The notes beneath the pieces were generated by a model that was given only the letters and a program-made list of their open reading frames with translations, made no database searches and was not told the origin of the DNA. From Oculina patagonica (lineage: Eukaryota): 64,000 nt of DNA. Location: assembly GCF_052425735.1 (NCBI RefSeq), contig NC_135770.1, positions 12,710,001-12,774,000 of the forward strand, given 5' to 3'. A program made the translations under genes and the position numbers. Positions 3,500 to 50,650 of this stretch are shown here, piece after piece. Position 1 is the stretch's first letter. The number at the start of each line of letters is the position of its first letter.

Positions 3500-6400
3500 A
3501 TGGCCGCCGGCAGTCCATTCTTTCTGATGCGCCTCGTATCTTCATCAGTAGCAGTGGCTAATCGAGCGGGAGGAATTATCCGTAGTATCATGAAAACAGG
3601 AAGCCTTGGTGTAGTGGACAAGGTTTGTTCATCTTATGTTTGACATTGTCAATGTTTGGGAATTGAAAGTGGTAATTATTAACAGCTGGTCACCGGTGTG
3701 ACCAAGCTAGCGGTATGAACTGAATGAAAGAAACCAGTTTGATCGCGCTCTATATCTGTGCTCTTGTACATTGTCTTGTAAAATGAAACTATATGGTGAC
3801 TATTTTTTTCTTTTTTTATCACTGCGTTTGTTTTGGAGAAAAAGTTTGGATGTTCATTTCTTTATCGGAAAGACTCTGGCATACAGCTTTTGTAGTGTCA
3901 TAATTTATTTATGAATTTATAAACTTATAAAATATGAATTTATGAGTCAGAGCAGAATACTAGGCGGCAAATTAAAAATGATAGTATCTTGGGTAATAGC
4001 CTACTTAGTATACTAAAAATCCCTGTCAGAAGTGAATCTAGGGGGAGGATGCAGGGGATGCATTCCCCCCCCCCCCACCAAGATGATCTGCGGCTTTTTA
4101 AAAAATGCAACTGGTATTATGGAAAAAAGGCGAAACATCATTCTTTAGCTTTAAAAAAAATTAGAACCAGAGAAAATTTCTTGAAAAAATCTTACCCACC
4201 AATACACTGAAGCAATTTTGTCTGACTGGAACTAAGTCCTGATATTTTCTTGCTCAGCCAGTCTGTTATAAACTTGTTATCATATTAAATTGCATCTGTT
4301 TGAGCATAGAGTTAAGTTAACGTTTAAATGATTTTTTAGGGAGATGGTGGTGAATATGACCCTCAGACTGAAGCAGATCGCGCATCACAGAAATGTATCA
4401 TTGGTTCACTCCTTAAAATGTATCCAACTCTCAGAATTATTGGCGAGGAAGAGGTTTGTTGCATAATTTTATTAAAATTTCATTGTGTTGTCCCAGAAAA
4501 TATCCAGCATATACCCTCCCTTTCTGGTTTTTTTTTAATTTTTTTTTTTTTTTTTCTTTTATTTTTTTCTTGTTTTTTATTTCTTTTTTCCCCCTATTTT
4601 TTTTTTTTTCCGGGGGGTATGGATATTCCCTAAAACTGAACATTGATACAAGGTTGAAATATACCCTGTTATCTGTATTAATTTTATACAATGTACATTG
4701 CTTTGAGTATATGAATTCTGATATATATAATGTACATGTAAATACACTTCAGGATATTCATTTGGATGACGTGAAAGAAGAGTTTATTGAAATATCTCAA
4801 GATGCTGCAGTGCTTTCAAAATCCTGCCCAGAAGATCTTACTTCAGTGAAACCAGAAGAGGTAAGTTAGTTTTGAATCCTTGATGCCACTGTTCAGAGTA
4901 CCGATATACAAAATTAATGAGTACTTTTTCTCCCTCTTTTCGCCAAAACTATTATTTAATAGTGTTAACTGGACATCATGCTTATAATTTTATACCACAG
5001 CAAAATAGTGATCAAATGTTCGAGAAATGCATAAAATGGCATTTTCTGTTCACATGTTCTTGATGAGTAAAAACCAAACACTTAGTTACCACTTGTACTG
5101 GTTTGTAAGATCCACAACTAGCTATTACTGAGCCTTTCTGATCAATAGCGCACAAACTCTGAAGTTAAAAACCCAACTAGTATGATTGCGTTGTTCACTG
5201 CTGTCAGTCATAATAATTGAAGGACCGAGGGCAAGATCAACACTTTGAGTTTTTGCTAAACTAAACATTCTCACAAACAACTAAAAGGATCCTAGCGTCA
5301 ACCCTTGGGGTTAGGGTGTAAAGACAAAAATATTATGTACATGTACAGTTTGTCTAAATAATAAATCTTCAATTAAGTTGAGCCTATTTTAAAACACACT
5401 TGGACACTTTGGCCTATTCTTGCACATTTTATTATCTTTTAGGTGACTGTATGGGTGGACCCACTAGATGGTACAAGAGAGTTTACTGAAGGTATGTCTT
5501 GCAATTGATTCATTTTGTGGAAAATTCTGCTCTGTTGCTGTGATTAATCATGTCATTAAAAGTCTTCTCAGAGTTGATTTTCTTATCTGCTTAAATGTGT
5601 TTTTTTTTCTTGTCTGTACAGTATGAATAGATTAAGTTATACACAGGCAGATTAAACAGGGGGCTGCAGCCCCCTTCTTCTTTGGATTTGTTTAAAAAAT
5701 ATAGTCAACCATCTTTCTAGAGTTCGTTGTGGGTTTTGGGCGAGGTTGCTGCCTTGCTCAAATGTTTGCAGCCCCCCCCCCCCTTTTTCTGAATTTTTCT
5801 AGATCTGCCCCTGTAAAAATTCTTTTTTTTTTCAAATGTATACAAACATACACATTGTACAAATTTTGCCAAGCCTGATGCTACGCGCCAGAATGTCCAT
5901 ATAAAAAACTGATTTTGGCAGATTTTGTACCATGTAACTGTTCTATGCAAAAAGCCCATTGTTTTAGTCTTGACTGTTGTAATCTATGCTAGGTCTGTAC
6001 GATCATGTGACAGTTCTCATTGGTATTTCAATGAATGGCAAGCCTGTAGCAGGAGTCATCCATCAGCCATTTTATGGCTACGAGAAGGAACCCCAAGGAA
6101 TCACACTGGGTAGAACCATGTGGGGTGTGAAAGGGCTTGGTACATTTGGCTTTACTCACGTCACCCCACCGACAGGACGACGTGTCATTACCACAACCCG
6201 CTCTCATTCCAACAAGACCGTAATAGAAGCAATAGAAGCCATGAAGCCTGATAAAATATTAAGGGCAGGTGGGGCAGGCTACAAAGTGTTGCTACTACTA
6301 GAGGGTACAGCTGATGCATACGTGTTTGCAAGTGCAGGGTGTAAACGTTGGGATACCTGTGCTTGTGAGGCACTTCTTGAGGCTGTGGGTGGCACTCTTA

Positions 6401-6549
6401 CAGATGTCTGCGGCGAGCACATCACGTATGATGGACAAGCAGACAGTTATGTCAACAAGATAGGTGTCCTGGGATCTCTAAAGGACCATAGGTTTTATGT
6501 AGACATGATTCCTGAGTCTATTAAAAGTAGTTTACTTGGAAAATTATAA
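3500..6549 (+). CDS. BPNT1: 3'(2'),5'-bisphosphate nucleotidase 1 (inositol monophosphatase superfamily)
   Basis: Exons 3500-3622, 4340-4453, 4753-4860, 5443-5491, 5993-6549, all GT-AG and in phase. Motifs DPQTEADR, IIGEE, VWVDPLDGTREFTEG, VTVLIGI, GGAGYKV, KRWDTCA. Confidence 0.93.
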
Positions 6550-19404: not shown

Positions 19405-20818
19405 TATGCCAACTCCATTATTTCGAAACCCTGCTCTGTCGAACAATTTTTCTTTTTCCTTTGGGAGGTCGAGATAGCGCGGTCCTACTGTAGTTATAAG
19501 AGAATCCTGATGAATTGCTATTCTCCGACGAGGAAATTGACAAACGTCTGGGGAATGAAATGTGATGCGTTCCAAATATTTAATAATTGTAGCTTTGAAG
19601 GTAATATGAAAAAATTCTAGATAACGTTTAATAATATATTTTCTGGCAGGTAGATTAGGATTTAGCTCGTGAACATGCTCACTCAGTAGGGTATAGGACG
19701 AGAACAAAAAAAAAATCGCCTCGCCTCCCTGATATTTTTTCCCCTGTACGCCACTGGGAGAGCCTGCTCGCACTCTATATAAATCTACGCGCACACGCAA
19801 CCGGCTGTGCCTAAAATGTATTCAAATCGTACAGTTTTTCCTTTTCAGAGATTGTATTTTTATAGCGTTTATAAAATCAGAGTTTTATAAGATGAATCAC
19901 CATGTAAAAAGTGAAATTAGTTAAAAGAGAATCCTCAATGATTGCCAGTCCTCTCTGATGAGGAAAGTGATTGGTGAAGGGAATGAGATGTATTCCACAT
20001 TTTATCTTCTTTGAAAAATAAAACCGCTGAAAGCCTTGCTAGACGGTAAACTCAAATGTTTTTTTTTTGGCTTCTGATAGCCAATGATTCTCAATACCAG
20101 ATTAGACATACGTTTTGGAAGAAAACCTCGCTAAACAAGCTAATCAGAACAGTTTTATCATGTGGTCTTTTCATGATAATAATCACATGCAGACCCCAGT
20201 TGTTCAAAGAATGGATAACTCTATGCAACGGATAAATCACTATCCAGTGGTTAGCGTGGTTTGTTTTGTTAACCCTTTTCGCTGGATAGCGCTATCCTTT
20301 CGTTGAATAACCGGGCTCGGTTATGTAACCAGTCGATAGTTCATAGACGGCGGGGAAAAGTTTCTCTCACAGAAAAAAAAAAAAAAAAAAAAAACCAAAA
20401 AAAAGATCTGTAGAAATGTCTTACGTGTTCATCTGACAGACATGTCTTGTTGGACCTTGTTGGGCGTTGGACATCTCTCCTTGGATCCCGAAAGCGCCTG
20501 GCGCGGTCTGACATCCGAACAGGAACTATCATACCGATTGCGTAGCCCCAGGCCGGAGACCGGGCAGTGTCTAATTAGTTGTTTCTGAAGTTCTTGTAAA
20601 GAAACATCATTTATTTCTGTATAGCTTTGTCGTCGGTGAGAACTTTTTCGGCTCCGAATCTGACGACGACTCAGGTTCTCTTAGGCTGCAAGCCAGTTTT
20701 CACTCTTGTGTAAGTTAGTCGGACAAACTTGTGTCAATTTCATGTTTATCTCGGCAGTGAAAACTGTTAAAGCATCGCTGGTTTTGTATCAACAAAACTG
20801 TTTAGCCATGTTCACAGT

Positions 20819-23800
20819 TTACTGGTAGACATGAATACAATGTTTATTTAAATCACATACCAGGACGTGACCGTTGTTTGTAACTGCGACCGACATGGGA
20901 TGTTCCATTCCTTCGTTAACAGAGTTAACAAACTTTCCATCTAGTGTGAACACTTGTAGTCTGGTGTTATGACTGTCGCAGACAACCAAATGGTTGTTGA
21001 ACTTGTCGATTGCCACTCCTCTGGGATAACACAGCTGCCCACAGCCAACGTTATACAGAAACTCGCCTTCCTCATTGAACACTCTTATGCGATGGATTTC
21101 ACCATAGGACACAAAGAACATGCCCTGGTGATGAACAGCGGACCATGGGGACTCGGCGCAGTCTGGATCACTAAAGGACTGCAGCAATTCTGTACCGTCA
21201 GGGGAGAGGACCTTGACTGATTTGTCGCCTCGATCGCACACGATCATGTGACCATCATTTGTGATGGAAACTCTCCATGGGTCAATAAGAAGCTCACCGG
21301 TGTGTTTAATAAACTGACCATGTTCAGTAAATACGGACATTCTGTATGCCTTTGGAACCTCTCTATGAAGGACTATGACGTCATCAGATGGTGTAAATGC
21401 CACTGACATCGGCTTGCCTATTCTCTCGGCACCAGTTCCCTTGTCTCCTATCGTTCTTATGTATTTCCATTCAGGATCAAACAGCTGGACTCGCTTGTTT
21501 TTACAATCTGCTATGGCAATGTTCCCAGATTTTTCACTCACTGCAATGCTTCGCGGCTTGTCAAATTCTTCTCGGCCTTTCCCACGTGATCCAAATGAAT
21601 AAAGGGGTTTGAACTCGTGTGGAGTGACCAGGACACCCCAGGGACTACCGGTCAGCGGCTTTCCATTAACCTCGACTGCTATGTCATGTAGACCAACACT
21701 GTTTGGCTTGTACCTCACCGTGTAGGTGCCATCTCTGCAATCTTCAACATTCAGTTTCTCATCTTTGCCAGCTGGGGAGAAGATTTTCACGGTTACTTGG
21801 TCGTGATCATAAAACAGATTTCCTTGTGAATCTCGTGTCGTGACTGTAAAATAAGCTTCTGCGCCCAATTCCGCTTCTTCTAAACCTTTTCCTTCGGCCA
21901 CCGATTGTGAAGGGTCGGTGTGAACAGCCACAAGCTGACCAGGTACCAAGCGTCTTATATCATTCACAATCTCTTTTCTTGCAAGATAATTGACACGCCG
22001 TGGTTTAAAGATCGTTATTTCCTGAGTTTTTAAAAGTTCTTCACAACGACCAAAGACAGTCTGCTCTGCTTGCAGAATCTCAGAGCATATTCCTTTTTGC
22101 ACGATAGCCTCGCCATATTCAACGGACATTCTCAGTTCAGAAGCGAACGACTGAAACTCTTCCAGTTTAGCCGTATGACCTCTCTGTTGCGCTTCATTAA
22201 TTTGAGCTAACTCTGTTTTTATGGCCATTTCATGTTCTCTCAAGACTTGAATAAGTTCTTCTACAGTTTCTGTCAGCTTCGTAAGCGCAGAAGAAATTTG
22301 CTCTTGGCTTCTCTTCATCAGTTCAGTTTGTTTCTCTATCTTTGTTTCAACAAGGCCAATTTTTGTCTTGACTTTTTCAAACACTTGCGACATTTGCACT
22401 TTTCGCTCTTCTGCAGCTTGTTGGATTTCTATCTTGTCATGACCATCATGACTTGTCTGACCACACTTGAGGCATATGCAAGCTTTGCATTCTTCACAAT
22501 AATATTCCACTGTTTCATTCTCGTGATATTTCTCTTTACATGTGACAGGTCTGTGCGTCGTCTCCCTTTGTGTCGACCATTTCCCTTAAAAACAAAGGTA
22601 TACAATAAATAATACTTATTAAGATTCATTCTCGCCCCCAAAGCCGCCTATCATATACTCCCTCTTACCCGGCAGGGCCAGTGCACGAGGAATAGGTGGT
22701 CTGGGGACGCATGATGTGATTGGCTAGACTTTAGCAAAAGGAGTTTAAAATCTAGCTGATCAAATCAATTTCTTTTTAATCCCTTTGTAATGTTTTGCCG
22801 GCTAAGACGGGGATGCAGCTCTAAAAACGAAAATGGTGAAGATTCAGATACGTTATTAGGTCCTCGTCCTCAAAGGCCGCAACGCTCTTGGTCAGCACCA
22901 AGATTTGTTGCTGGTTCCATTTTTAATCTTCGCTTGTAACCAGTGGACAGGTGCATGTTTTTTAAAGCTTGGCTTGTATAACCAATTGGGCAGGCTTGTA
23001 ATGTTTCGTTCTTATCTTGGCTGGTATAACCGGTTTGACAGGCACCACAATGGAAATGTGGTGGGGGCTGTGAAGTTCAACAATGGAATTGCGATGGTGC
23101 TGGTGGTGGAGAAATAGATTGCGCAATAATTTAACCGCTACTGTGACAAAAAACGAATTCTTACAAACCGGATATATAAGCCAAGATAAAAAGAAAACAT
23201 AAGAAACTTATCCAACTGGATATAAGATAATTAGATTCCATAGCATTTTATTCATGAGTCTATGACGTCATCGGCAATGACGTATTCCTGTCCACGCTAA
23301 TGAGATTGCTGCCCAAAAACCCGGCCTAAAATATTCCTACTATACTACTGAGGTAGGATCGAAATTCAGTTCAAATATTGTTCACTTTTCCGTGCATAAC
23401 GAGAGGAAGTTCATTGAAGCAAAGAATGATCCAAAACTGAACTATTTTTAACCACTCTTGGGAAAAACGCCAACTAACAGTAGTGTGACACATAAAGCCC
23501 CATGCAAACTAAAAGGTCACAAGCAGCCCCAAGTTTGACTGACAAAAGGAAAGTTACTAGTAGCCTTCAAGTTAGCCTCCCGACATGTGAAACTCGGTAA
23601 GAGGTAGTGAAAACAGTTGTTTTTAAAAGAATTTTTCAGAGAATGGTGGGATGTATTTTTGCAGCCCAACTAACCGAACGCCTGGAAAAGGCTACTGGAA
23701 GAGGCTGATTGCCGCGAGCCACGTGTCTAGACAGAGGCTTTTTAAAAGGATTTTGAGGGAACTGAAAGCCTTTGGGGAGATCTGATTTCGCAGCAGGATT

Positions 23801-24656
23801 CGAATCACAGTATGTACCACTAAAGATAACTTAGATTTCTTTTAGGAGAGAGGTGACTCTCAATGGACCACCGACTTCTCCACAAAAGCCAATCTCATTC
23901 TCTCGGGCTTTTCTCGTGGAAGGGAAAAGCCCTGGGAATGAGGTAGCACACAAACTAACCTTCAAAAGTAATTTCCTTTTTAATGGTAAGTTGCAAGTCA
24001 TCGAGCTTTTTCATGACATGTTTGATGCCGCTTCCAATTTCACTAAGTTGATCTTTAACATTGTCCTCATCCTTCTTCCACTGAGTGAGAAGTTCTTTGT
24101 AGTGATCTTCAAGTTCAGGGTCCATGCACTCACTCTTCAGATGTTCTATAGCTGTTTTGTAATTAGCCCCTCCCAGTCTTACCAGAGTATTCTGGATGTC
24201 CTGCCAGTAGCAATTGAACGTTGAGTCGTCCACCGAAGCGTGCTCGGCATGAGCGTACACGGTGTTTCTAAAGTACTTAACACGAGCGATATCCGCTTCC
24301 CGACTGGTGTCTGCTAGGGCAGGGAGGTCGTCCCAGCCAGTTATTGGCGCTGTAAAGCCACATATGTTTCTTAACAAAACCATCAAAAGAGTAATGTCAA
24401 ATTTTGTTGAAGACACTGAAGTTGACATGGCAGGAAAAAGCTTTCCCCATTGTGTTGCATTGATGATTTTCCTTGCCCTGAGTGATTGCAACGTGCTTTT
24501 ATTTCCCGCCAAAACTGTGTGAAGATTTGCGGGTGTGTGGATGGTATCAAAAGTGTCTTTCAGGGCCTGGGTTCCAACATCAACCAACAGACGACACAAG
24601 CGAGCGTAGTTTGTTGTCTCCCTGGTGGAAGAAGTTGTTGATGATGCACAAGCCAT
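20819..24656 (-). CDS. Chimeric DZIP3-type HEPN + B-box + coiled-coil + filamin + NHL-repeat protein (~820 aa, RING-less TRIM-NHL)
   Basis: Exon 24656-23960 (NYARLCRLL, FDITLLMVLLRN, RNTVYAH; donor G|GTTAGT, phase 1) joins exon 22584-20819 (acceptor TTTTAAG|GG; B-box CKEKYHE..YYCEECKACICLKC..H..H; filamin DGTYTVRY..GSP; NHL repeats). Confidence 0.75.
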
Positions 24657-24814
24657 GGGAAGTTTCTGTCGTTTAATATTGGTATTAACTGTATTAATTT
24701 ACGTTTTCAGCGAGAGCTCTATGGGAGGGGCCTAGGGAAGAAAAGTCCGATCCTATCTCCCCCCTCTCCACTTTGATCGCGCTTGAATCCGTCACTGATA
24801 TCAGAGATTATTAA

Positions 24815-24976
24815 AAGAACTATCCACGGTATACTACAATTCTTGAGTTTTGATTGGTTTACAGGCCATAGTATATGAGCTCATATACCATGAGCCACAA
24901 ATATGGTACATGCACGCGTCAGCGAGAACAGCCGGGAAGCTCAACTATCAAAATTCTATGGGTGTTTTTAATAAAA

Positions 24977-25010
<34 letters not shown>

Positions 25011-25590
25011 AGTTATAGCCAACTCACATCCAACGCGCGCTAATGGAATAATTGTTAATTATAGTTCGCCCCAAATATTCTCTGATTCTGGTTGGTTTAA
25101 ATTGATCACGTGACGCGATAATGTTCATCCGTGGAGATAATCATTCAGGGTGCCCGTCTGAGAAAAATATCTGGATGGATAGTACTCGTCCGTGAATTTT
25201 TTTTGTAAAGAAGCGAGCCTAAGGAGAAAAAACACTGAATTCACTGCGTCGAGTAGATGTCTTGTCTGGTTTAGTTTCGTTTGTTACATTTCGGTTTTCA
25301 AGTGTTTCATCCTAAAACGTAAAAAGAATTTAAGATGCTTATTTTTGAATGGGTGTGTGGAAGAAAATTTAGTGGTGAGCATTAAAGGTAATAGAGCCGC
25401 GTTTCTGACTCGGAACTATCGGTCCGATAGTTGCCCCTTGGAAATTTGATGTTCTTAAAACTACATGTAGCATATAAGCCCTCAAAGCTTTGCTTCTCGG
25501 GCTGGTATTTGTTTTAAGAACATCAAATTTCCGCGGGACAACTATCAGCCGATGGTTCCTCGACAAAACCACCCTATTGTTTAATTATTA
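24815..25590. repeat. Interspersed repeats with terminal palindromes (possibly non-autonomous Crypton-type)
   Basis: Palindromes ACAATTATTCCA...TGGAATAATTGT (24973-25060) and GGAAATTTGATGTTCTTAAAAC...GTTTTAAGAACATCAAATTTCC (25440-25532). Similar architecture at 40780-41540 and 55335-57460. Family assignment is uncertain. Confidence 0.45.
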
Positions 25591-25729
25591 ACTGTCTTCC
25601 TCCCATCGCGATGCAATATTTCGGCTCTATTACAGAGTATTTCCAGTATGAGTATCCTTGTATTAAAGGTCTGTAAGGTTCTTATGAGGTTTGCTAAGGT
25701 TCTTTTGAACTGCACTGTTGATTCGTTTC

Positions 25730-26590
25730 CTGATCATAAGATACATTTCCTAGATCGTCTAATTAATAAGAACCTTACAGACCTTTATTACAAGGAAACA
25801 CATACTGGACAGTACACGTCGTTTTCTAGTTTTACCCCTTGGCGTCTTAAAACTGCGTGGGTTAAAGCATTGTATTCTAGAGCTTACAAAATTTGCAGCA
25901 ATTGTAAACTTTTTCAGGGCCAAGTTAAACGTATTGATAAGTTTTTGTCATGGAATAATTTTTCTAAGAGAGTTCGTCGTTCTATTCTCAACCGTCTTAG
26001 GAAAAACACCAACAATCCCAAACGAACCGACAAACTTGTGGAAGACAATGGTGCCAAAACAATCTGGCTTAAATTACCTTACGGTGGTAAAAAGAGGTGA
26101 AGGGTTAGTTAACAAATGTATCAAGAAACTTAATAGACTACTTGGTAAAAAGGTTAAGTATATAATACGTTATGATACCACCAAAATTTCACATTTCTTT
26201 TCCAACAAGGACCCAGTTCCTACATTGCAAAAATCTAGCGTTATTTATAAACTTTCTTGTCCTGATTGTTCTCAACAATATACAGATCGCTCTTTGGCCT
26301 TTAGGTTAAATGGGCACGCCACAAGGCCTGAACAACCCATGTATCACCATCTGGCTAATTGCAACGCCTTAAATGAACTAGTCATGCAGCTTTCATGGAT
26401 TACCTGATTGTTTCAATGACCAACTAACGCCCTCCGTAAGTTTTTAAAGACCATATTCGTAACGCAGTTTACAACAACTTCGAAGTAATTGACTATAATT
26501 ACAATTGGTCACAATTAGCGTTCCTGGACGCCTTTCATATCAAGAATCTTAAGCCTAGCATTAATGAAGGACTCAAAGACCTCAAAGCCT
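25730..26590 (+). mobile_element. Degenerate Penelope-like retroelement fragment (RT thumb plus GIY-YIG endonuclease)
   Basis: IHFLD..TDLYYKETHTGQY..SRAYKICS, then after a frameshift KSSVIYKLSCPDCSQQY..TDRSLAFRLNGH. Frameshifts, a stop and loss of the YIG residues indicate decay. Confidence 0.85.
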
Positions 26591-48196: not shown

Positions 48197-50650
48197 TTAA
48201 TCATCACTACCACTGTTATCACCATCAATTGGAGGAGCCTGTACTCCTTCAATGAAAAATTGCTCAGGAGAATCAATGGATTCACAATCAATCTGCTCAC
48301 TGTAGCCTACTGATTTATTCGGCACCAATAAATATTTTTGTTCATTATTAAGACTACTTGGGCCTGTATGTTCACAGGCATCAGTTTTCACTTCTGTTTC
48401 ATCCTCAACTGATTTAGACTTGTTGGTATCATGCTGTGACAAATGCATTATGCTACCCTCACTAGGAGGCCTTGGAGAGTTTGTCAAAAGCTGCTCTTTG
48501 TATCCAGAAAGCTCTGCAGAGATACTTGGATCATCAGAAGAACGCTGTTTTTTTTTTTTTCAGGAGCACACTGTTCTGTTGTTGCCTCTGTTACCATCCA
48601 AGCAGACTCATCCTCAGCAGCAGTTTCTGTGGATTCATTGATGCTTGGAGAGTTTGCCAAAAGCCACTCTTTGTATCCACTAAACTCTGCAGAGATATTT
48701 GGATCATGAGAATAAAAAGGAACATACTGTTCTTCTGCTTCCTTTGTTCCCATCAGAGTAGACTCATCATCAACAACAGTTTCTGTGGATTCAAGATCAG
48801 CCTGTGGACATTCTCTGGTACTTTCGTCAACTGTCTTGCCTGCTCCTCCGTCAATGCAGAAATCACTTATAGCACCCACTTCCATTTGGTCCTGTTCATT
48901 GGCATCAAATGAAAGGCGTCGGATGTTACCACTTAACATCTCATCCTCCCCACTGTAGTATGACCAGTTGAAAGGAAGCTCCTTGTCGGCAATCTCACCT
49001 TCATCTGGGTCAATAACCATGCTGTAGCTTTGAATGCTTGATGCACCTTCTATACCAGAGTCGTCATCACTTTCTGGGGGACCAAACAAGTTGAAGCTGT
49101 GAGAACGACTAGGAAGCAAATCTTCACTCATGTTACTGTCACCAAGTGTATAATCAGGGCTGCTGCTAGCACGTAATTTGGTAGGGTAAGACCTCAGTTT
49201 ATTTCTTTCTTTTGGCGTTATAGGCTTCTTGTCAAGGATTATCTCTTTACCTTTGAAGTAAGACAGAACAACAATCCTGTACGGCTTTACCCTCGCAAAA
49301 GGATTTCCAGAAACTGAAAGGTACTTTAAATGGGAACTCAAACACAACTTAGAAATTTCATGGACCACGCGGATTTGATTATGGCTGAGGTCCAATTCAA
49401 TGAGTCCTGTGAGACAGTCCAAGCCACTGACAGTCTCGAGATTGTTGTGACTAAGAATGAGGGATTTCAAGTGTGCCAACTCTCCAGGCATTCCCGTAAT
49501 GAAGTGAATGTTGTTGTGTGACAAATTTAAGCATTTAAGACTTGGGCAGCATAACTGCTGCAGATCCAAATGAACAAACTCATTATAGCTCATGTCCAGG
49601 TTTTGCAAGACGGGCAAAAGTTTAAGGGAGGTGTCAAACACTGCTAGTTTGTTGTGTGTTACGTTAAGATTTGTAAGCTGACACCAGGGCTGAACAACCA
49701 CTCGATTTTGCATCAACCTAGCTGTGGTGAGACCCCTCCATGACTCCACAGGGCCCTTGATCCTGGGCGCCAAACGTTTCTCTGCTGCGCAGTCAACAAG
49801 TAGTTCTTTCAATGTCGTCAAGCAGTATCTTGCTGTCAGATTTGTGATCTGAGCTTGAACTTTTGACAGGTTGTTGATTAAAGTCAGAGGGACAGCCATC
49901 AATGATCAGACAGTTCAGTGCCTTAAACAACGAAATATCAAACTCTAGGTGGCTAGATAGCTCCTGTGAAGTTGTAGCCTTGGTGACAATGCTACTTACA
50001 CAAAGTGATTTCAGCTGATATATAAAATCATAAAGACTTCCCAAATCTGCAGCATCAACATCATCCACCCCATTGGTTGGCTCTGGTAACTGCAACTGAC
50101 GGGTAATACAGTATAGCTGAGTGGGAACTAAAGTGAAACTTTCACCCTTCGCTAGCACGTCTTCGCCATTTTGAGCCAATTCCTTTGCCAGCGCTTTTGT
50201 TACCGACATAACATCATGCCGTTGAACTTCTAAAAACTCAACAATTTCAGGAGAACTTGACACATACGTGCTGCTGTTAACTAGTCGTTGTAGATAATGT
50301 TCTAAGGCAGCTTTTCGCTTCTCCAATACACACAGCGCCATATTCGACATGAATTTCTTCGGCGGTAGCATGTCTTTGGGAATGCCATAGAGGCTCACAA
50401 GTTTTTTGTGGAGTTCATTAAATTCACGGTACCTTCGAAACACAAACCAGTGGTTAGACTTGGTCATTACATCGATTTTGTAGAGTGCATGGGGAGAAGG
50501 AAAGCTTCTTTGCCAAACTTCCCTAATGACGACATGTTTGATTGCAGGCGACGAACCGTTATCACTTTCTGAAGTTAAACGACCACGGTCTTTCCTCCAT
50601 AAAGCACTCCCAGCTGGTGGAAGGAAGCCCTTCAATGAAGTCATTTTCAT
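48197..50650 (-). CDS. Nischarin-like PX-LRR protein, intronless coding region with two frameshifts (assembly error or pseudogene)
   Basis: PX domain (HWFVFRRYREF..LPPKK..LEKRKAALEHYLQ) and NISCH-like TQLYCITRQLQ and DLGSLYDF, then LRRs. Frame changes at GGG 49889-49891 and at the T13 run 48548-48560. Confidence 0.8.

Follow-up and report, generated by a model that had tools for sequence, protein, structure and literature searches.

TRIM-NHL proteins such as TRIM71/LIN-41, TRIM2, TRIM3, TRIM32, Brat, Mei-P26 and Thin combine a type 2 B-box, a long coiled coil, a Filamin repeat and a six-bladed NHL propeller. The HEPN_DZIP3 family (PF18738) was founded on the human E3 ubiquitin ligase DZIP3/hRUL138, in which the HEPN domain is internal (about residues 385-553) and is accompanied by TPR and a C-terminal RING. 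The same domain heads the HEPN_DZIP3-NACHT-LRR proteins of cnidarians and molluscs, where a NACHT NTPase and LRRs form the sensor and oligomeriser. Lineage-specific expansions of HEPN_DZIP3 have been published (PMC8260672, PMC10236652, PMC9646362, PMC3710099), and the published fusions of the domain involve NACHT, LRR, TPR, ankyrin, CARD, Death and RING. B-box, Filamin and NHL were not found as HEPN_DZIP3 partners in the searchable literature, nor was any published description of such a fusion. Here we analysed a gene of the coral Oculina patagonica that encodes this combination. It occupies positions 20819 to 24656 on the minus strand of a stretch of 64,000 nucleotides (hereafter the window; contig NC_135770.1 of assembly GCF_052425735.1, positions 12,710,001 to 12,774,000 of the forward strand), and coordinates below refer to the window unless a genome locus is named.

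The predicted protein of 820 amino acids (aa) resembles the TRIM-NHL proteins in that B-box2, coiled coil, Filamin and NHL follow one another in the same order, and it matches their solved Filamin-NHL and B-box/coiled-coil structures with E values of 2e-44 to 1e-13. Unlike them, it lacks the RING, the B-box1 and the E3 head, and its HEPN domain comes from a separate first exon instead. In addition, the HEPN-headed family is expanded and fast-evolving, whereas the TRIM-NHLs are single conserved orthologues. With DZIP3/hRUL138 the protein shares PF18738, and DZIP3 is the best structural match to its head, but the Oculina HEPN is N-terminal and is placed where a RING would be on a TRIM-NHL body. 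With the HEPN_DZIP3-NACHT-LRR proteins it shares the head (55-71% identity) and, in the O. patagonica genome, the same phase-1 type of first exon, but a coiled coil and Filamin-NHL are found in place of NACHT and LRRs. The parts of the gene and its product are as follows.

23960..24656, minus strand: exon 1, with the ATG at 24656; residues 1-232 and the first base of Gly233
24099..24533, minus strand: HEPN_DZIP3 core (PF18738), residues 42-186; Pfam E 8.2e-65
24249..24269, minus strand: predicted catalytic motif RNTVYAH, residues 130-136 (R130-N131-T-V-Y-A-H136)
22585..23959, minus strand: the only intron, 1375 nt, GT..AG, phase 1
20819..22584, minus strand: exon 2, from the last two bases of codon 233 to residue 820; TAA stop at 20821-20819
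22439..22540, minus strand: B-box type 2, residues 248-281; zf-B_box match
22028..22426, minus strand: coiled-coil region, residues 286-418; AlphaFold model and match to TRIM3 (8amr)
21638..21919, minus strand: Filamin/ABP280 Ig-like repeat, residues 455-548; Pfam E 5.7e-24
20825..21607, minus strand: NHL beta-propeller, residues 559-819; Pfam NHL E 3.3e-22
20409..20818, minus strand: 3' untranslated region (UTR), at least about 410 nt; transcript contigs reach 20409, where mapping was halted by a repeat

Two open reading frames (ORFs) are visible in this region, 24656..23955 (233 aa) and 22510..20819, both on the minus strand, the frame of the latter being open back to 22584. An earlier note on this DNA had proposed that they are joined by a phase-1 GT-AG intron (23959-22585), and this held in every respect. 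The donor reads GAAG/GTTAGT (GT at 23959-23958), and at the acceptor a pyrimidine tract is followed by TTTAAG/GG (AG at 22586-22585). When 24656-23960 and 22584-20819 are put together, the coding sequence is 2463 nt long, with a Gly codon split in phase 1 and zero internal stops, and an in-frame TAG (23957-23955) lies directly past the donor. The 820-aa product agrees at every residue with P0001, the NCBI entry 'B-box type zinc finger protein ncl-1-like [Oculina patagonica]', so the gene model is already present in the public annotation.

For transcript evidence, contigs of runs X1, X2 and X3 and the raw reads of one poly-A run were placed on 20300-25300; X2 bears the same organism label as the 2026 O. 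patagonica RNA libraries. A 492-nt contig of X2 was placed on 22416-22583 and 23959-24282, jumping 1375 nt with the ends CT..AC (GT..AG on the gene strand), and thereby covers exactly the junction 23960/22584 expected from the proposed intron. Both exons have a depth of about 4-30 in X2 and X3, where intron depth is zero apart from repeats. The raw poly-A run yielded five reads only on the region. Contig cover is zero at 24642-24808, suggesting that the 5' UTR is short. X1 gave low-depth contigs over the intron that are rich in mismatches and indels, which suggests DNA or pre-mRNA of another individual. Splice signals, identity with the annotated protein and transcripts agree far beyond chance and confirm a real, expressed and intact HEPN-TRIM-NHL gene.

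One contig of X3 (record 17, 1615 nt) contains exon 2 and extends 215 nt beyond the acceptor (22586), and this extension was not placed on exon 1. The HEPN-exon contig of X3 is about 95.7% identical to the gene (5/117 mismatches), which is near the 95% threshold of likeness. Therefore, the unplaced piece probably represents exon 1 from an organism of slightly different sequence and falls below the threshold, although it may also derive from an alternative upstream exon.

Pfam profiles of HEPN_DZIP3, zf-B_box, Filamin and NHL all scored above threshold. The zf-B_box match has 27.6 bits (cut-off 24.1), and all eight zinc ligands of a B-box2 are present (C248, H253, C262, C265, C270, C273, H278 and H281) at positions that are invariant or nearly so among 54 relatives. 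The B-box2 was the single B-box found, and RING, U-box, HECT and RBR gave zero matches with Pfam across the 820 aa of both exons, in agreement with the earlier note, which had described a single B-box and no RING. NACHT/NB-ARC with LRR, TPR or WD repeats was likewise absent from the protein in the Pfam search. The full-length AlphaFold model (mean predicted local distance difference test score, pLDDT, 82) shows the order HEPN bundle, helix 180-228, tether, B-box2, coiled coil, Filamin and NHL; exon 1 contains the entire HEPN module together with its C-terminal helix (residues 180-228). In the model the head is carried on a disordered tether of 19 residues (225-243) that straddles the exon junction, and the coiled coil is one helix of 111 residues (286-396, about 165 A) with a return helix (399-418). 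The coiled coil matches the solved B-box/coiled-coil chain of TRIM3 (8amr, E 1.2e-13), the Filamin region matches TRIM71 (6fpt, E 2.3e-44), and the NHL region gives full-length matches to the NHL domains of TRIM2, TRIM3, Thin, Brat, TRIM71 and Mei-P26, its 24 modelled strands being consistent with six four-stranded blades. The nearest coral relatives of the body are single-exon TRIM-NHL genes bearing a RING, with a body identity of 62-65%. In the RING-type relative P0002, a RING (16-60; zf-C3HC4 and zf-RING_UBOX), a B-box1 (100-138) and a B-box2 (158-197) are encoded in one exon. Judged against this arrangement, the HEPN exon occupies the position of both RING and B-box1, B-box1 also being absent.

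The assignment of the head to HEPN_DZIP3 is clear by profile (217.4 bits against a cut-off of 27, covering model positions 1-144 of 144), and a search of the genome with the head returned the gene itself at C13:12734099-12734533 with 218 bits. The motif RNTVYAH has the spacing Rx5H, which is inside the Rx4-6H rule, and its R is directly followed by the typical N. It had been described as intact, and the alignments bear this out: 119 of 120 coral homologues retain the R, and as many retain the N and the H; the 100-row alignment A1 shows no variation at these three positions, and the motif in Nematostella is RNDLYAH. The modelled head (pLDDT 84) is an all-alpha HEPN bundle, and the fold that matches it best is that of human DZIP3 residues 385-553 (E 1.3e-7, template modelling (TM) score 0.63, root mean square deviation 2.6 A over 172 residues, 27% identity), followed by mouse DZIP3 and then CXorf38, with TM scores of 0.63-0.66 for human and mouse DZIP3. 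In an exhaustive structural comparison the HEPN domains of Csm6 came top (Z 7.3 and 6.4); AF_0298, Cas13, AbiF, Swt1 and sacsin were among the top solved matches at Z 5-7.3, and the Roquin HEPN was also present. A Foldseek search of the HEPN model against PDB returned nothing at E <= 0.001. The structural matches are consistent with the Pfam assignment, of which they are no independent proof. The link that had been drawn to DZIP3-type HEPNs of invertebrate immune-type proteins is borne out by published work (PMC3710099, PMC8260672, PMC10236652). A complex prediction with two copies of the HEPN exon scored 0.28 against a mark of 0.32, which speaks neither for nor against pairing.

The architecture is not confined to O. 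patagonica. It is annotated in six further corals, namely Stylophora pistillata, Acropora digitifera, A. palmata, A. cervicornis, Montipora capricornis and Orbicella faveolata, as well as in Nematostella vectensis. In two further coral assemblies the gene calls give a separate HEPN ORF (about 234-240 aa; 150 aa in the second) and a downstream body ORF (about 590 aa). Contigs of 2.6-4.4 kb from JGI and Logan carry a joined ORF of 822-834 aa; these contigs are intron-less, which implies that the spliced mRNA exists in several species. The Nematostella protein XP_032222554.1 (841 aa, 'TRIM71'; older partial model EDO49287.1) came out of an exhaustive search of cluster representatives. It can be aligned with the Oculina protein over the full length (28% identity, E 2e-100) and has HEPN_DZIP3, B-box, Filamin and NHL. 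Given this collinear protein, the fusion dates back at least to the divergence of sea anemones from stony corals, and is thus at least Hexacorallia-wide. A feature search of the ESM Atlas returned generic cnidarian NHL/B-box/Filamin clusters only, and nothing on the fusion.

Databases have contained such proteins ever since the first Nematostella gene set, with names that point to an E3 ligase. RING-less relatives are called 'E3 ubiquitin-protein ligase TRIM71' or 'tripartite motif-containing protein 2-like / 3-like' (P0419, P0255, P0264, P0270, P0146 and P0184). These names are inherited from the body and are misleading, also for coral transcriptome studies; coral differential-expression reports of 'TRIM71' may partly concern HEPN-TRIM-NHL genes. 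The gene under study is thus one member of an architecture that is undescribed in the literature searched yet publicly visible, and it is not unique.

Other arrangements of the head were also seen in corals. Two HEPN_DZIP3 domains occur in tandem in one chain in P0123 (a single ORF of 461 aa) and P0122 (HEPN-HEPN-Filamin), and in P0124 and P0126 the HEPN pair is followed by a body of the NLR type. P0121 of Acropora palmata has six HEPN_DZIP3 copies, five of them equidistant from the query, and looks like an artefact of assembly or annotation.

Of 264 candidates in the O. patagonica genome, at least 150 are HEPN_DZIP3 hits; only three of these hits have a stop, and most of them lie in open frames of about 230-260 aa within large tandem arrays. 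By pairing HEPN hits with body hits, about 15 loci were recognised in which a HEPN exon lies upstream of a TRIM-NHL body exon on the same strand. They are distributed as follows.

C2, 28.2-28.55 Mb: cluster of HEPN-plus-body loci
C13, 35.84-35.98 Mb: four HEPN-plus-body loci
C13 (the gene under study, and another at 2.74 Mb), C6 and C7: singletons
G000:C2:28206130-28207671: locus with a broken body, four stop codons in the body exon
G000:C13:35948239-35949564: locus with a broken body, one stop codon in the body exon

Since two of the about 15 loci have stops in the body exon, the clusters hold decaying copies. Eleven full-length HEPN-TRIM-NHL proteins are annotated in Oculina, and all nine annotated paralogues that were mapped to loci are interrupted once, by an intron of 0.7-1.9 kb that has the homologous position and lies in phase 1. 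Eight HEPN exons of NLR-type or other genes end alike, with G/GT(A/C/T)AGT and a next codon that begins with G. As every mapped HEPN first exon, nine of the TRIM-NHL type and eight of the NLR type or others, ends in phase 1, the HEPN first exon is a uniform phase-1 cassette for exon shuffling. In the O. patagonica genome, exons of this type form the head of well over a hundred NLR-like and other genes. Meanwhile, a separate HEPN_DZIP3 subfamily (model positions 1-136) was observed at G000:C9:12.45-13.53 Mb and C7:5.05-5.23 Mb; its members are open frames of 1350-1640 aa with the head and a long downstream part in one exon, unlike the cassette of about 240 aa.

Among ten Oculina paralogues, the mean identity is 84% in the HEPN core, compared with 46% in the coiled coil, 54% in Filamin and 53.5% in NHL. 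The protein identity of the paralogues is 46-61%, so synonymous sites are too saturated for dN/dS. A tree of the bodies was rooted on distant RING-type TRIM-NHLs of the O. patagonica genome, leaving aside the long-branch rows P0146, P0170, P0063 and P0117 and most near-duplicate RING rows. A 'no N-terminus' clade nested among RING genes was kept unlabelled and outside the approximately unbiased (AU) test; the contig with P0024 ends 185 nt upstream of the gene. On this tree the RING forms are basal, and the HEPN forms fall in two large groups, with a RING clade nested inside one of them. The RING gene at C2:28.67 Mb, located between HEPN-type groups of the C2 region, groups with the HEPN-type P0129. 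Counting rows of known head, at least four changes between RING and HEPN heads are needed. A single clade of HEPN-type bodies was rejected (difference in log-likelihood 224, p-AU 5e-81), this p-AU being descriptive, as the group was named after an earlier tree was seen. The TRIM-NHL heads cluster in the head comparison (5 label changes against about 30 with shuffled labels), although they do not form strictly one clade (p-AU 0.016). We read these patterns as a single early capture of the head exon, after which the TRIM-NHL paralogues exchanged heads, the direction and number of the events being uncertain.

The metal-independent RNase activity of HEPN domains depends on two paired heads, as in RNase L, Ire1, Csm6 and Cas13, and RING E3 activity likewise depends on head pairing. 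A swap between RING and HEPN would therefore keep a proximity-gated logic. With moderate confidence, we regard the protein as an old cnidarian TRIM-NHL body, acting as sensor and scaffold, that carries a DZIP3-type HEPN head as a putative clustering-activated RNase with a role in defence. The fusion would have arisen and spread by exon shuffling, with RING and HEPN heads replacing each other several times. In the proposed mechanism, the NHL/Filamin end would bind a target, either RNA or protein, and the coiled coil would form a rod-like dimer in which the two HEPN heads are held apart. Gathering of the molecules on a multivalent target, or a TRIM32-like pairing of heads, would then bring together heads of different rods, and the paired heads would make up a two-domain HEPN active site able to cleave RNA of an invader or of the cell itself. 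RNase activity, head pairing, ligand and defence role are all predicted parts of this scheme. The scheme would work like RNase L, Ire1, Csm6/Csx1 and Cas13, where a ligand sensor governs a HEPN site of the Rx4-6H type to which two HEPN domains must contribute; however, the kinship is only at the level of the superfamily, the Oculina protein has no kinase, ankyrin or CARF, and its activity is a prediction. The chains with tandem HEPN_DZIP3 domains (P0123, P0122, P0124 and P0126) fit a domain that works in pairs.

The earlier note had suggested that the coiled coil itself assembles an active HEPN dimer, and as worded this is unsupported. In the solved structures the TRIM coiled coil is antiparallel, forming a rod of about 170 A with one N-terminal catalytic domain at either end; pairing of RINGs takes a fold-back or higher-order assembly, and TRIM32, itself a TRIM-NHL, forms tetramers in which two heads are paired at either end (PMC4864278, PMC5076470). 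The Oculina protein has a helix of 111 residues and a disordered tether, and its coiled-coil geometry is predicted from homology and a monomer model. Since the heads are apart in the published structures, activation by clustering seems more likely than a HEPN dimer built by the coiled coil. A similar logic operates in TRIM5alpha, TRIM25 and TRIM32, where an antiparallel coiled coil parts two heads that are active only when paired and clustering or a tetramer is needed (PMC4864278, PMC5076470), but their head is a RING that builds ubiquitin chains, while the Oculina head would be an RNase. The NHL domains of relatives bind RNA (PMC5908797, PMC9070667). In Nematostella 24 h after poly(I:C), the DZIP3-like NVE23351 (log2 fold change about 3) and the TRIM71/NHL-like NVE22283 (log2 fold change about 4.2) are up (PMC8476169, file S1). 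HEPN, NHL and DZIP3 are unmentioned in the main texts of two Nematostella antiviral papers. A defence role is suggested by the expansion of the family, by the head common to NLR-type genes and by this family-level induction in Nematostella.

Several observations weigh against this reading. The Z values to known HEPN RNases are moderate for a helical bundle; the PDB sequence search gave chance coiled-coil matches only, there being no solved structure of a DZIP3-type HEPN; and no report of RNase activity of any DZIP3-type HEPN domain was found in the literature search. Gene conversion or recent shuffling, and not selection on catalysis, could be the reason why the head is so strongly conserved. 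The NHL domain is mildly acidic (net charge -4), so RNA binding is not to be assumed, and the two poly(I:C)-induced genes are other Nematostella genes, neither of which is tied to the fusion orthologue XP_032222554.1. In addition, the expression evidence consists of assembled contigs alone at modest depth, and the gene is a dispersed copy whose neighbours (inositol monophosphatase, PX-LRR and RING genes) are unrelated to it.

Other explanations have to be weighed on the same evidence. The head might be no nuclease at all, but a module for homotypic pairing or an adaptor in the style of CARD, PYD or Death that links different sensors into a common signalling assembly, or else an RNA binder as reported for human DZIP3/hRUL138. 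Its N-terminal effector position in NLR-type proteins (PMC8260672, PMC9646362) would suit such a role, as would its occurrence on NLR-like, TPR, DED and TRIM-NHL proteins with 55-78% identity to NLR heads, the imperfect clustering of heads by architecture and the lack, in the literature searched, of any record of DZIP3-type RNase activity. However, R130, N131 and H136, the residues that define catalysis, are kept in nearly all coral homologues and in Nematostella, and a pure adaptor needs none of them; moreover, pairing and catalysis are compatible, given that HEPN active sites form at the pair interface. We therefore consider an adaptor without nuclease activity unlikely. The body could instead point to a developmental or housekeeping regulator of the LIN-41/TRIM71, Brat or Mei-P26 kind, in which NHL binds specific mRNAs and the HEPN does the work of decay factors that would otherwise be recruited, without any part in defence. 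Among solved structures the body is nearest to TRIM71, TRIM2/3, Thin, Brat and Mei-P26, whose NHL domains bind RNA (PMC5908797, PMC9070667); this agrees with such a role, and so do the age of the architecture, conserved from anemones to corals, and the location of the gene under study outside the tandem arrays. The lineage-specific expansion to about 15 loci with tandem clusters and pseudogenes, the fast divergence of the bodies (46-54% identity), the repeated swapping of heads and the sharing of the head with NLR-type genes tell a different story, expansion, divergence and swapping being hallmarks of conflict-driven families, and the NHL is not basic overall. Such a regulator is, in our judgement, quite improbable.

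The joined gene might also be an artefact of annotation or assembly that conceals a HEPN-only protein and a TRIM-NHL with a different N-terminus. An unspliced transcript would indeed yield a HEPN-only protein of 233 aa through the TAG after the donor, and both the low-depth intron contigs of X1 and the X3 contig with 215 nt unplaced on exon 1 could be taken in this sense. The X1 contigs, however, show the mismatches and indels expected of DNA or pre-mRNA from another individual. The X2 contig spans the exact junction with the frame kept, the intron is essentially uncovered in X2 and X3 while the exons are covered, intron-less fusion transcripts exist in several species, and the Nematostella protein is collinear. 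The earlier note had named, as what would overturn its proposal, a HEPN exon ending at the TAG at 23955 and another upstream exon for the TRIM part; the X2 contig and the nine paralogues with the same junction and phase contradict both. An artefact is accordingly very hard to sustain.

Returning to the clustering-activated RNase, it can be extended, tentatively and with considerable doubt, to the family as a whole. RING and HEPN would be interchangeable proximity-gated heads on an antiparallel TRIM-NHL scaffold, and hexacorals would possess, alongside their TRIM E3 ligases, a second set of 'TRIM RNases' switched on only by clustering on a target of viral or transposon origin. Such a set would correspond, in animals, to RNase L or Csm6, with TRIM5alpha-like logic, and would have been diversified by shuffling of the phase-1 head exon. 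If the head is an active RNase, TRIM-type sensors would have a second output, RNA cleavage as against ubiquitination, and the DZIP3-type HEPN, which heads hundreds of cnidarian and mollusc immune-type genes, would gain its first defined biochemical role. The uniform phase-1 head exon and the repeated swaps of RING and HEPN would offer a concrete route for the recombination of sensors and effectors in invertebrate immune repertoires, and through the Nematostella orthologue the idea can be tested in an animal open to genetics.

The neighbouring genes in the window, and the repeats around the gene, complete the description.

48484-50650, minus strand: PX-domain and LRR exons
5986-6549, plus strand: inositol monophosphatase exon

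Rfam returned over 20000-26500 only a sub-threshold palindromic miRNA-like match. The palindrome (25427-25545) matches the MIR2934 precursor model on both strands with 35 bits against a gathering value of 100, and is probably a transposon hairpin and not a miRNA gene. Within the intron, a stretch at about 23640-23806 has a contig depth of 105-540, the rest of the intron being uncovered, and is probably an expressed interspersed repeat. Another interspersed repeat (24809-25142, about 255 bp, with an internal inverted repeat) lies about 150 bp ahead of the start codon; a first look at the genome gave 3262 candidates for it, its contig depth in the RNA runs is very high, and its look is that of a miniature inverted-repeat transposable element (MITE) or a short interspersed nuclear element (SINE).

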